This document shows, piece by piece, positions 11,459 to 15,225 of a stretch of DNA of 64,000 nt (its first letter is position 1; each line of letters opens with the position of its first letter). Location of the stretch: positions 117,304,001 through 117,368,000 of the forward strand of contig NC_086103.1 of assembly GCF_963921235.1 (NCBI RefSeq), in the 5' to 3' direction. The DNA is from Mobula hypostoma. Taxonomy: Eukaryota. A program made the translations under genes and the position numbers. The notes below the pieces were generated by a model, which saw only the letters and a list, made by a program, of their open reading frames with translations, was not told the origin of the DNA and did no database searches.

Positions 11459-12807
11459 CTTGAAAGTGGCATAACAGGTAGAAGTTTACATACACCTTAA
11501 CCAAATACATTTAAACTCAGTTTTTCACAATTCCTGACACTTAATCCTAGAAAACATTCCCTGTCTTATTTCAGTTAGGATCACTAGTTTATTTTAAGAA
11601 TGTGAAATGTTGGAATAATAGTAGAGAGAATGATCTATTTCAGCTTTTATTTCTTTCATTACTCTCCCAGTGGGTCAGAAGTTTACATACACTTTGTTCG
11701 TATTTGGTAGCATTGCCTTTAAATTGTTTAACTTGGGTCAAACATTTTGGATAGCCTTCCACAAGCTTCTCACAGTAAGTTGCTGAAATTTTGTTCCATT
11801 CCTCCAGACAGAACTGATGTAACTGAGTCAGGTTTGTAGGCCTCCTTGCTCACATATGCTTTTTCAGTTCTGCCCACAAATCTTCTATTCCCACAGGAGT
11901 TATTTTTTCTCCAGTCTCACATCTCTCGGTCCCTTGTTTTCCTTTCAATTAGTTTTTTATGTTTTGGAGTTACAAAACATAACATTTATCCTTAAATGTA
12001 ACTCACATTTGACTTCACCTGGGCTGTGAGTAGTGGCACTGCAAAAGATGTTCATATCATTCTGCAGGAGAAGGAAGACTTTGTTCTTCATCGACATTTA
12101 TAATTATTGGATGAAAACAGAGTCAAACAAAAGTTTGATCCTGGTGTCACTTAGGCAGTTGAACAATGCGTTATAGAGGCCAACTCGAAGAAGGACCATT
12201 TATGCTATGTGCCATAAAGAATATTTAACAAGTGGTAACTATTTAATCATAACAGATGGAAATAAGTATCAACAATCATTGAAGTATAGAAACTTTTGCC
12301 ATCTTCTAGTAAAATAGAAAAGCGAAGGAAACCATGGGCACAACTGTCTACAGAAATGACAATTGGCAAAACATACAGAATCATTTAGCTAATAAGTTGT
12401 TCCTGTATCTAGAAGAGCCTGCATATACTCAAACGGACTGCAGGAAGAATATTAAAATCCCTTTTTAATACTGTAATGCAAAAATGGTTCATATTTTTAA
12501 AAGGAACATATTCTTAATTCTGAAAGGTATTTCTCATTTCCCAGAAATCTCAGTCATATTGTCACAGTTGGTAGCTGCAAAATAAATACTAGTTGTTAGG
12601 ATTTTCACAATTTGTTCCACTGGAAATCCACACATTGACCATTTCTCCTGTTCTGGGTGCCAACTCAATGGATTCCAAGCAGAAAATATTTAATAATGCC
12701 CAGATAATTATTCAGCATTGATTTTTTTTCTGGTTTGAACACCTGCAAACTGCTCCCATGTATGTATCAGTAATGTGTCGAGAGGGCCGGTTTCAACTTG
12801 TGTCGTA

Positions 12808-13130
12808 GTCACATAGCACAGAAACCTGCCCATTGGCTCACCAAGTCTGGCTGATAATATGCAACCATTACAATTCACTTATGTGGGTCCTACATTGGTC
12901 CCATGTTTTTATTTTCCCCATATTCTCATCAATCTACCTCAGATTCCACCACTCACCTACACACCCAGGGTAATTTACAGTGGCCAATTTAACTCCCAAA
13001 CTGTACAAAAATATTTGAGATGTTGGAGGAAACGAGAACACCCAGAGAAAACCTATGTAACCAACACCACGGTTAGGATGGAATCTGGGTCTGGCATTGT
13101 GAGGCAGCAGATCCACTAACTATGTCACTT
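12808..13130 (-). mobile_element. Old tRNA-derived SINE
   Basis: Similar to the SINE at 60275-60554 (aatttaca..gccaatt, ggaggaaac...cacccagagaaaacc). Confidence 0.6.
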
Positions 13131-13794
13131 ACCACTTTAAATAGGCCTAGATTAGACTCCTCGTTTCAATAAAATTATACTTAATTTATATTCCTTCATT
13201 TGAAGTTGTTAAGCAACAGTAATTTCGGATGAACAGGAATGGCCCTATAAACTTTGCTCTGAAATCTTCTTTCTTTCTTGATGTAAAGCTCATCTCAAAT
13301 TATCCAAAAAATTATTAATATCTCCAAGTATTTCTTATCTTATACACAGATGCGTTTGGTGTCCCCACTCTATCCTTTTAAGCCCAGCAAGCTAAATTAA
13401 AATTTGCTAATCATCCTACTTCTATTCTACTTCAATAATCTAATAACGTGTTTAGTTATAGAACTATTAAATTGACATCAAGTACCTTGCCTATAATACC
13501 GTTAATAAGGCCCTGTGAGAGTTAAATCACCAATTAAATGCCAAAAAAAGTAGGACAGCATTTATTACTTAAAGTCATGGCCATAAACTACACTGCAGGA
13601 TACAGAGCATCTTTGGAATCGCACAACCACCCATTACTTTAAATATGTAATAGTTGGATCTGTTCAGTGAGAAGCAATGTTTACAAAGTTTCTTTAACCC
13701 AGAGAGCGAATAGAACAATAAGGAATAATGACTTATTTCAGCTTTTGTTTCTTTCATCACTTTCCCAGTGGGTCAGAAGTTTACATACACTTTG

Positions 13795-14680
13795 TTAGTA
13801 TTTGGTAGCATTGCCCTTAAATTGTTTAACCTGGGTCAAAAGTTTTGGGTGGCCTTCCACAAGTTTCTCACAGTAAGTTGCTGGAATTTTGTTCCATTCC
13901 TCCAGACAGAACTTGTGTAACTGAGTCAGGTTTGTAGGCCTCCTTGCTCGCACACGCTTTTTCAGTTCTGCCCACAAATTTTCTATCGGATTAAGGCCAG
14001 GGCTTTGTGATGGCCACTCTAATACCTTGACTTTATTGCCCTTAAGCAATTTTCCCACAACTTTGGAGGTATGCTTGGGGTCATTGTCCATTTGGAAGAC
14101 CCATTTGCGACCGAGCTTTAACTTCTTGGCTGATGTCTTGAGATGTTGCTTCAATATATCCACATAATTTTCCTTCCTCATGATGCCATCTATTTTGTGA
14201 AGTGCACCAGTCCCTCCTGCAGCAAAGCACTCCCACAACATAATGCTGCCACCCCCATGCTTCACGGTTGGGATAGTGTTCTTTGGCTTGCAAGCCTCAC
14301 CCTTTTTCCTTCAAACATAACGATGGTCATGATGGCCAACAGTTCAATTTTTGTTTCATAAGTCCAGAGGACATTTCTCCAAAAAGTAAGATCTTTGTTC
14401 CCATGTGCACTTGCAAACTGTAGTCTGGCTTTTTTATGGCAGTTTTGGAGCAGTGGCTTCTTCCTTGCTGAGCGGCCTTTCAGGTTATGTCGATATAGGA
14501 CTCGTTTTACTGTGGATATAGATACTTGTCTACCTGTTTCCTCCAGCATCTTCACAAGGTCCTTTACTGTTGTTCTGGAATTGATTTGCACTTTTTGCGC
14601 CAAAGTACGTTCATCTCTAGGAGACAGAATGCGTCTCCTTCCTGAACGGTATGACGGCTGCATGGTCCCATGGTACTATT
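13795..14680 (-). pseudogene. Tc1 DD34E transposase, N-terminally truncated and frameshifted
   Basis: [48 protein letters not shown]. Confidence 0.92.
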
Positions 14681-15225
14681 GTTTGTACAGATGAACGTGG
14701 TACCTTCAGGCGTTTGGAAATTGCTCCCAAGGATAAACCAGACCTGACATCATTTTCTAACCTCAATCTGATAGAAAATTTGTGGGCAGAACTGAAAAAG
14801 TGTGTGCGAGCAAGGAGGCCTACAAACCTGACTCAGTTACACCAGTTCTGTCTAGAGGAATGGAACAAAATTCCAACAGCTTACTGTGAGAAGCTTGTGG
14901 AAAGCTATCCAAAACGTTTGACCCAAGTTAAACAATTTAAAGGCAATGCTACCAAATACTAACAAAATGTAGATAAACTTCTGACCCACTGGGAAAGTGA
15001 TGAAAGAAATAAAAGCTGAAATAAATCATTCTCTCTACTATTATTCTGACATTTCACATTCTTAAAATAAAGTAGTGATCCTAACTGACCTAAGACAGGG
15101 AATGTTTTCTAGGATTAAATGTCAGGAATTGTGAAAAACTGAGTTTAAATGTATTTGGCTAAGGTGTATGTAAACTTCTGACTTCAACTGTATCCGCATT
15201 AAGTTTCCCCAGCCATTTTTCAGCC

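Follow-up and report, generated by a model that had tools for sequence, protein, structure and literature searches.

A dead, fixed fold-back Tc1 derivative with 1.84 kb of single-copy DNA between its inverted 3′ ends

Structure of the locus

The window, the whole 64,000-nucleotide stretch of Mobula hypostoma DNA analyzed here, has the following features at and around the Tc1 locus.

4285–4304, minus strand: detached left Tc1 tip, the reverse complement of CAGTTGAAGTCAGAAGTT (4285–4302) and then TA (4303–4304), flipped relative to the left arm
4305–4422: original left flank, inverted, 118 nt, both strands free of CR1 endonuclease signal
4423–11458, minus strand: later Ty3/Gypsy-type LTR retrotransposon with LTRs at 4423–5028 and 10817–11458 and TG..CA ends
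11463–11479: flipped flank piece, 17 nt, between the LTR target duplication and the left arm, which it adjoins
11480–11888, minus strand: left arm, a Tc1 3′ end with IR/DR and the last ~60 codons (..IEDLWAELKK..GNATKY), its first 11 nt missing and its break after ..TTCTAT
11889–13726: cargo, 35–39% GC, without a gene, tRNA or Rfam match
13727–14746, minus strand: internal Tc1 body, starting between the two direct repeats of the 3′ IR and running through a broken transposase to about codon 21
14747–14755: junction filler, part of ACATCATTTTCT, which reads TSFS; antisense Tc1 5′ UTR
14756–15192, plus strand: right arm, a Tc1 3′ end with complete terminus, ..CTTCAACTG ending at 15190, TA at 15191–15192
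15230–15780, plus strand: decayed CR1-type LINE fragment from the end of the endonuclease domain onward; right flank

The two Tc1 3′ arms (11480–11888 and 14756–15190) lie inverted to each other and are 94% alike (93.6% over the 409 nt of the alignment of 11480–11888 with 14771–15179). Each consists of the transposase C-terminus and an IR/DR, and their inner breaks are only about 15 nt apart (11888 vs 14756–14771). Between the arms are the reverse-oriented Tc1 body, a 260-nt direct duplication (11629–11888 = 13727–13986, 92.3% alike) and 1838 nt of other DNA. Element positions 1–420 are thus left of the 1.84-kb insert and positions 161–1625 right of it, with an overlap of 260 nt, where the unit length of 1625 is an arithmetic estimate. 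An uninterrupted run from left arm to transposase body, which would make a unit of about 1.6 kb, is absent here, as the arm ends at 11888 and resumes at 13727; imperfect homology of the internal body to Tc1 may extend to 13712. An earlier note on this DNA had described a non-autonomous Sleeping-Beauty-type Tc1 derivative with two inverted 3′ ends, a ~255-bp direct duplication and a partial internal transposase, and our analysis bears out this description, the duplication being 260 nt and the reversed body retaining remnants of HTH_Tnp_Tc3_2 and DDE_3. The locus is a dead, fixed, locus-specific rearrangement of a fold-back Tc1 derivative. In itself it carries little weight, being one decayed, fixed, non-coding rearrangement amid repeat-rich DNA.

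Tc1 identity and the family-level junction

The right end reads ..GACTTCAACTG and then TA (15190–15192), and so has the terminal CAGTTGAAGTC.. and TA target feature; 82 paralog contigs of the sister species (X5) run into unrelated DNA exactly past 15192/15193. The IR/DR has outer and inner direct repeats (..AGAAGTTTACATACAC..), at 11674–11695 and 13772–13793 vs 15161–15182. Pfam searches with the two ORF pieces match HTH_Tnp_Tc3_2 (5.6e-20) and DDE_3 (2.5e-14), and the transposase C-terminus, ..FKGNATKY, is 73–87% identical to salmonid and other Tc1 fragments. The gene is broken, with ~20 N-terminal codons missing and a 14-nt deletion. A distinct 5′ end (left IR, 5′ UTR and start codon) is absent and is replaced by C-terminal coding sequence and 3′ IR; the 5′ UTR is represented by 12 nt only, at 14747–14758.

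The junction at 14738–14768 passes from codon ~21 (antisense) to the 5′ UTR 12-mer and then to ..CTGACCTCAATCC.. of the 3′ region, and its filler is bounded on each side by a microhomology switch (TG, CTG). In ordinary Tc1 copies the antisense ORFs read ..ASKAMTSFSGIFQAV, and TSFS matches the antisense 5′ UTR there. When the ORF that spans the junction was used as a protein query, all matches were ordinary Tc1 C-termini and antisense ORFs, the latter revealing where the filler comes from, and no other junction locus was found. At the DNA level, many paralog contigs bridge the body/right-arm junction in the source and sister species, and a contig bridges it in a third species. In the source species (X1) there are mismatches at 14744 and 14759, inside the junction, that lie within the alignments of 51–55 contigs, and a paralog (record 7) covers 14703–14875. 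Two contigs of X10 (depth 13) lie over all three of 14744, 14759 and 14769 with end distances of 37, 52 and 49, which implies one contig spanning about 14707–14818.

The bridging contigs indicate that the architecture with two 3′ ends characterizes a multi-copy family and is not confined to this locus. What is present here is a dead copy of an abundant non-autonomous Tc1 family, or else two such copies in tight linkage. The left end of this family was long ago replaced by an inverted copy of the 3′ end, giving inverted arms of about 435 nt. From the junction, the family would have originated when the 5′ end was lost via two microhomology-mediated template switches: copying probably left the transposase at codon ~21, took up 12 nt of the 5′ UTR and then continued in the 3′ region of the opposite strand. 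The locus serves as an example of this two-right-ends architecture, an abundant family in the source genome and its relatives.

The 1.84-kb cargo

The core of the cargo (12148–12803 and 13132–13623) is single-copy, with one contig each in the source and sister species (X1 record 1, 11960–13746; X5 record 19, 11959–13787), and the bin depths of 14.0 and 9.04, respectively, are those of these single contigs. We found no donor or second carrier of the cargo at ≥85% likeness among the source- and sister-species contigs, a comparison on a filtered record set that cannot prove a donor absent, and no second copy of 11889–13726 within the 64-kb window. Further copies with the same arm–cargo junctions were likewise not found in the two species. 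The contig sequences indicate that the cargo has apparently been neither multiplied nor copied from a donor that still exists. The earlier note had proposed that this host DNA was captured and moved, and had reckoned with a single-copy cargo as the first part of what would speak against that; single-copy is how we find it, and with neither a donor nor a second arm–cargo copy at ≥85% likeness in two species the proposal is not upheld.

Rfam and tRNA scans of the cargo gave no match, and its GC content equals that of the adjoining non-repeat DNA. The insert between the Tc1 arms also contains two repeat fragments. One, at about 11940–11984, is a piece of a very abundant repeat that terminates at 11984; the other, at 12804–13131, is SINE-like and of low copy number. 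The old SINE of the earlier note is thus present as a SINE-like repeat, but its age is doubtful, since 12872–13088 is about 99% identical to contigs of the third species. The sister species is roughly 98% identical, and its contig crosses 13726|13727 by 61 nt; of the two cargo junctions, the independent contigs cover this right-hand one but not the left. As this contig bridges the cargo/Tc1 junction, the structure is older than the split of the two species, and the contigs indicate that it is fixed in both.

Flanks of the element

The detached left tip at 4285 is an exact 18-mer match to the right terminus. We considered whether it is the end of an independent, older Tc1 and rejected this, as the homology ends after 18 nt and the upstream sequence alone scores just as shuffled sequences do on average. 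A 7-nt inverted repeat (AACTTCT at 4285–4291, AGAAGTT at 11480–11486) brackets the flipped segment, and before the LTR element inserted 4305–4422 was contiguous with 11463–11479. That element is surrounded by a CTTG target duplication (4419–4422 and 11459–11462), its LTR pair is 94% / 84% alike, a tRNA-Pro-like primer site adjoins 10816 and a purine tract adjoins 5029; Pfam identifies PNMA gag, RVT_1, RNase H and integrase, and an ORF for a DTG protease is also present. After the Tc1 structure was in place, a 148-nt inversion bounded by microhomology would have flipped the left tip, and insertion of the LTR retrotransposon would have been a further later event.

The earlier note also held that the element splits a CR1 target, so that the whole 3.7 kb occupies a single TA site. 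An HMM of the C-terminal half of the CR1 endonuclease matches the right flank from profile position 44 only (15230 onward). Profile positions 1–43 are recovered, with 15–49 bits, in two CR1 copies that served as controls within the window, and neither tblastn nor a purpose-built HMM found them on the candidate left flanks that we tried (the reverse complement of 4305–4422, the same joined to the reverse complement of 11463–11479, 4000–4284 on both strands, and 11380–11479). A word search with the right-flank CR1 piece gave no match, and a full HMMER search with it led to CR1 endonuclease proteins. Comparison with other CR1 copies at the DNA level is uninformative, as even the right flank fails to align. 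A weak CR1-like match inside the cargo (12907–13011, E = 3) we judge to be chance, since the HMM misses it. The sequence immediately left of the element is LTR retrotransposon and not CR1. A TA is present at both outer ends of the composite; the CR1 continuity of the flanks, on which the single-site argument had rested, was not reproduced.

Comparison of the three arm copies

Over the 260 nt that they share, the left arm, internal copy and right arm have 11, 9 and 8 private changes, respectively, so that the tree is nearly a star, with a stem uniting the outer arms of 1–2 changes vs terminal branches of 8–11. These near-equal branch lengths would suit a simultaneous origin of the three copies. 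The left and right arms agree against the internal copy at nine sites. The earlier note had taken such shared variants as a mark of the outer arms; at least four of the nine are simply private to the internal copy, but one variant, 11751/14908, is rare, common to both outer arms and absent from the internal copy and from 20 paralog contigs. A second, 11753/14906, also common to the outer arms, is a minority variant (24%) among paralog contigs. We rejected the three-way comparison by itself as uninformative on whether the outer arms are closest relatives, a relationship that the paralog contigs partly reinstate at one site.

Origin of the arrangement

Most likely the locus is either resident host DNA bracketed by truncated, linked Tc1 copies or the product of repair in place, and nothing indicates that the composite transposed at any time. 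Our tentative choice as the best explanation of the whole is a fold-back family with linked insertions around resident DNA. The 1.84 kb would be host DNA that was always at the site, and two Tc1 copies would have inserted roughly simultaneously, some 2 kb from each other, for instance through re-insertion very close by and restoration of the donor site. Incomplete gap repair or deletions would then have stripped the inward-facing parts, so that the outward-facing ends alone remain. The single-copy state of the cargo, its GC content and the near-equal branch lengths of the three arm copies fit this reading. Two insertions within 2 kb with complementary truncations are improbable in themselves, and linked insertions do not predict variant 11751/14908 without the further assumption of an inversion of one copy or a short tract of conversion.

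We also note that the retained pieces make up exactly one complete element (left 1–420 and right 161–1625), overlapping by 260 nt and with both ends in the correct orientation, the very set expected if the gap in one element was repaired with overlapping synthesis. Such an in-place repair of a single fold-back Tc1, an alternative that the earlier note had allowed for, would involve synthesis from both ends that overshot and products joined via the 1.84 kb as filler, which was either copied off an ectopic template or captured as a loose piece of DNA; this amounts to gap filling independent of transposition. It accords with the imperfect homology and possibly error-rich sequence at the right junction (13712–13727), with the other repair-type scar at the locus, the 148-nt inversion between 7-nt inverted repeats, and with the finding of Tan et al. 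(2021; PMC8277862), who ascribe most single-copy cases to transposition-independent repair. However, copying should leave a parent, and none was found at ≥85% likeness in the two species or within the 64-kb window; moreover, the internal copy lacks the left arm's rare variant at 11751. On balance we consider repair in place rather unlikely. Less credible again is a derivation of the left arm from the right one, as an inverted copy made secondarily at this locus when a left-truncated element was replicated or repaired and a fold-back template switch took place; the arms would then have been identical at first. The arm breaks within about 15 nt of each other and the two variants shared by the outer arms speak for it, but the short stem speaks against it, the shared sites are 2 nt apart so that one conversion tract suffices, and there is no reason why the copy should land 1.84 kb away. 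In addition, the third species has the same arm with the same break nucleotide, followed by a LINE reverse-transcriptase fragment, which points to an effect of the site.

The contig depth of that third-species junction suggests that it is multi-copy, and the proposed site, after ..TTCTAT, is about 15 nt within the inner boundary of the arm. It is conceivable, though we think it improbable, that the fold-back family is a repeated trap for foreign DNA at a fixed inner break point and that our locus was moved once by cut-and-paste. If this were true, long-armed Tc1 derivatives would be vehicles of structure-driven capture and transport in a vertebrate, and a real capture hotspot at the break point would give a tractable vertebrate model for the pickup of host sequence by long-armed DNA transposons. 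Movement of two outward Tc1 ends and the host DNA between them as one composite or Pack-type unit of 3.7 kb into one TA site is compatible with several observations: with the left tip un-flipped, each outer end has a complete Tc1 terminus next to a TA, the ends are of the same type as in the mobile family and have one rare variant in common, and the single-copy state would fit cut-and-paste that left no donor copy. But the continuity of the target, its sole positive argument, was not reproduced, the left flanks giving no CR1 signal where controls score 15–49 bits; the structure is fixed in both species, without a further copy or any sign of polymorphism; and it requires all of the in-situ history plus a mobilization. 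We judge movement as a unit very unlikely, and tentatively retain linked insertions around resident DNA as the preferred history.

Comparison with known systems

Composite transposons, and macrotransposition by two linked elements, occur in bacterial Tn elements and in maize Ac/Ds. Our locus resembles them in its two outward-facing ends of the same family around host DNA and differs in that there is no sign that the outer ends were used jointly, neither a pair of empty and filled sites nor a second copy being seen. As the locus illustrates, transposon ends around host DNA do not by themselves give evidence that this DNA was captured or transported; a donor, another copy or an empty site has to be shown as well.

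The Pack-TIRs of animals (Tan et al. 2021, Nat Commun, PMC8277862) likewise have inverted TIR-transposon ends on both sides of non-transposon DNA, are like our locus in being single-copy, and have breakpoints inside the element and not at its ends. By the definition used there, the DNA captured in a Pack-TIR must have a recognizable parental copy, and captures are biased toward nearby donors (PMC8277862); in contrast, our locus has no parental copy at ≥85% likeness in two species, and no duplication is thus demonstrated.

With Sleeping Beauty-type DD34E Tc1 elements (PMC9777934), which that survey lists mainly in ray-finned fishes, the locus shares the CAGTTGAAGTC.. termini, two direct repeats per arm, the TA target, the HTH_Tnp_Tc3_2 and DDE_3 transposase and the C-terminal ..FKGNATKY. 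Unlike them it has no 5′ IR and none of the first ~20 codons, its 5′ UTR is down to 12 nt and its frame is broken. Since the fold-back family lacks the transposase N-terminus, it depends on transposase in trans. The closing comparison is with non-autonomous Tc1/mariner derivatives that arose by abortive gap repair and microhomology-mediated deletion, such as the Stowaway-like MITEs derived from a Tc1/mariner element (PMC3814204). The family junction, with its two microhomologies and a 12-nt filler from elsewhere in the element, is of the same kind, but the fold-back family is not a simple internal deletion: one of its switches went to the opposite strand, its 5′ end is an inverted 3′ end, and its ~435-nt arms include coding sequence.

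Organisation of the Tc1 pieces

In the region, one Sleeping-Beauty-type Tc1 is present as three pieces that overlap:

11480-11888, minus strand: left arm, the Tc1 3' end as its reverse complement, comprising the final ~60 codons and the IR, whose two direct repeats are both present
13727-14746, minus strand: internal Tc1 body, which begins between the paired direct repeats of the 3' IR and reaches back to transposase codon ~21
14756-15192, plus strand: right arm, the same Tc1 3' end, with a complete terminus ..CTTCAACTG at 15190, then TA

The arms are 93.6% identical across 409 nt, which bears out an earlier sequence-only description of two inverted Tc1 3' ends with a third, internal copy. 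The internal body begins with 260 nt that duplicate, at 92.3% identity, the innermost 260 nt of the left arm; between these duplicates lie 1838 nt (11889-13726). Two ORF fragments of the body match HTH_Tnp_Tc3_2 and DDE_3 in Pfam. We also note that the C-terminus of this Tc1 (13727-15190) is 73-87% identical to fish Tc1 fragments, salmonid and other, and that contigs of this Tc1 reach, in three species, a summed depth thousands of times that of single-copy DNA. Since SB was reported almost exclusively from ray-finned fishes in one survey (PMC9777934), its presence here may merit a look at horizontal transfer.

An ORF that crosses the body/right-arm junction reads ..KDKPDL-TSFS-NLNLIENLW. In the protein collection, ordinary Tc1 copies have antisense ORFs that read ..PDLWRST...ASKAMTSFSGIFQAV, a match that identifies TSFS (ACATCATTTTCT) as a 12-nt leftover of the 5' UTR. 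Two switches form the junction, one at TG and one at CTG microhomology, and the second of them goes to the opposite strand. Many paralogous contigs of public sequencing runs, aligned to the locus, carry this exact junction. In the source species, Mobula hypostoma, alignments of 51-55 contigs report mismatches at 14744 and 14759, both within the junction, and one paralog contig covers 14703-14875. For a third species, positions 14744, 14759, and 14769 all fall within the same pair of contigs, whose end distances imply a span of ~14707-14818. These paralogs indicate that the element with an inverted 3' end in place of its 5' end is an abundant non-autonomous family of at least three species, with arms of ~435 nt and, by arithmetic, a unit of ~1.6 kb.

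In a three-way comparison over the shared 260 nt, the left, internal, and right copies have 11, 9, and 8 private changes, respectively, a near-star pattern that fits a simultaneous origin. Variants that the earlier note had taken as shared by the outer arms are thus mostly private changes of the internal copy, as paralog contigs confirm at 13914, 13864, 13831, and 13747. One does stand, 11751/14908, where both arms have T and the internal copy and 20/20 paralog contigs have C; at a neighbouring site the arms have a 24%-minority state. This weakly suggests arm-arm affinity, but only 2 nt separate the two sites, and a single short tract of conversion from one inverted arm to the other would account for both.

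A 232-nt contig of the third species (run X9) leaves the Tc1 at the exact break nucleotide of the left arm (after ..TTCTAT, equivalent to 13986) and passes into a LINE RT motif (..SSA.NTIIP..) matching 63122-63143 of the window. The run is very small, so that the contig's depth of 15.6 suggests a chimera present in multiple copies. If the break, which lies inside the arm and ~15 nt from its inner boundary, is recurrent, it could be a structural hotspot, as a break or capture site.

The insert

The 11889-13726 insert has no second copy within the window and no match in tRNA or Rfam scans, and its GC content (35-39%) is similar to that of adjacent non-repeat DNA. Among contigs of the public runs at >=85% likeness, a single one spans 11960-13746 in the source species (run X1), with zero differences, and a single one spans 11959-13787 in the sister species (run X5, ~98% identical). 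In seven bins of the insert core the summed depth exactly equals that of the lone contig (14.0 and 9.04), the Tc1 parts being thousands of times deeper. The donor locus or further arm-cargo copies that the earlier note proposed to seek did not appear: contig data of the two species, which may miss records, show no donor or second carrier of the core at a divergence still visible (>=85% likeness), on a scale where the arms themselves are only 6-7% apart. The sister-species contig overlaps the insert/Tc1 junction by 61 nt, and the structure is therefore older than the split of both species; the left junction (11888/11889) is bridged by no independent contig among those listed.

The insert is only partly unique, with two repeat fragments inside:

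~11940-11984: short, AT-rich piece of a highly abundant repeat (28,000-82,000 in summed depth; 131-158 contigs diverge after 11984)
12804-13131: low-copy SINE-like repeat

At 11929 depth is only ~270, so the former does not run on into the Tc1 arm. Within the latter, two small third-species runs that contain nothing else of the insert match 12872-13088 with 2 differences in 182-217 nt (~99% identity). The summed depth of this stretch in the source species is ~25-30 times that of the single-copy DNA beside it, and it is a low-copy repeat that is well conserved or else a target of capture. What had been called an old SINE is SINE-like and, at such identity, not obviously old.

The flanks

The left arm adjoins an LTR retrotransposon:

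4423-11458, minus strand: nearly complete Ty3/Gypsy-type LTR retrotransposon
4423-5028 and 10817-11458: its LTRs, with TG..CA ends, 94% alike

It has a CTTG 4-nt target duplication, a tRNA-Pro-like primer site, and PNMA-type gag, DTG protease, RT, RNase H, and integrase domains; a 19-nt tandem repeat is unequal in number between the LTRs (11179-11273 vs 4790-4810). With this element removed, an inverted 18-nt Tc1 tip plus TA (4285-4304), with no Tc1 homology past those 18 nt, lies <=135 nt from the left arm, which is without exactly its first 11 nt. The tip and 130 nt of flank form a flipped segment of 148 nt (within 4285-4422 + 11463-11486), flanked by the 7-nt inverted repeat AACTTCT / AGAAGTT. 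A small microhomology-mediated inversion thus explains the flipped tip without any duplication, and the LTR element is a later insertion into the flipped Tc1 flank.

A CR1 split by the whole structure had been claimed, implying a single TA site. A CR1 HMM was built from CR1 endonuclease proteins retrieved with the right-flank piece, and the left flank was un-flipped before the test. Positive controls were CR1-type LINE copies in which an endonuclease domain is recognisable:

32161-33481, plus strand
26254-26705, minus strand

The right flank matches from profile position 44 (15230 onward, 83.6 bits), and positions 1-43 are detected in these two other copies (48.9 and ~15 bits). The DNA directly left of the arm is the LTR retrotransposon, and no candidate left flank gives a CR1 signal with the HMM, with which tblastn agrees, so the claim is not supported. 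Most simply, the CR1 is 5'-truncated close to the Tc1, and single-site insertion is thus unproven. Elsewhere in the window, 36624-41027 is a 4.4-kb tandem array of a 27-nt unit, GAGAAGGTGAAGCCAGCGGAGGGGACG (~163 copies, 88% matches), with higher-order periods of 54 and 81 nt.

Origin of the structure

Taking the readings together, a one-off, non-mobilised origin is probable. As no parental copy is seen and the split-CR1 argument failed, we tentatively favour a history in which the 1.84 kb would be resident host DNA between two linked family copies that came at the same time, the inward-facing parts of both then being removed through incomplete repair. Such elements duplicate, as a rule, through re-insertion nearby and restoration of the donor site. 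Repair of one element with filler is a rather unlikely course. Movement of the composite as a unit by cut-and-paste seems improbable, since it needs the same precursor as an in situ history and an extra mobilisation besides, and its sole positive argument was the split CR1; we likewise doubt strongly that the left arm arose secondarily from the right arm by inverted copying. Copying capture, whether by gap filling or template switching, should have a parental copy, usually nearby (PMC8277862), and at >=85% likeness no such copy is seen.

Comparison with known elements

Cargo-carrying Tc1 elements had been thought rarely described in vertebrates, but cargo between TIR-transposon ends is documented there (PMC8277862). 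In 100 animal genomes that study counted 370 Pack-TIRs, most of them single-copy and ascribed to transposition-independent repair; Pack-TIRs are recognised by a donor copy, and none is seen for this locus at >=85% likeness. Rearranged Tc1/mariner derivatives made by microhomology are already known as well (PMC3814204), and the locus is a further example of such rearranged or cargo-bearing TIR elements.
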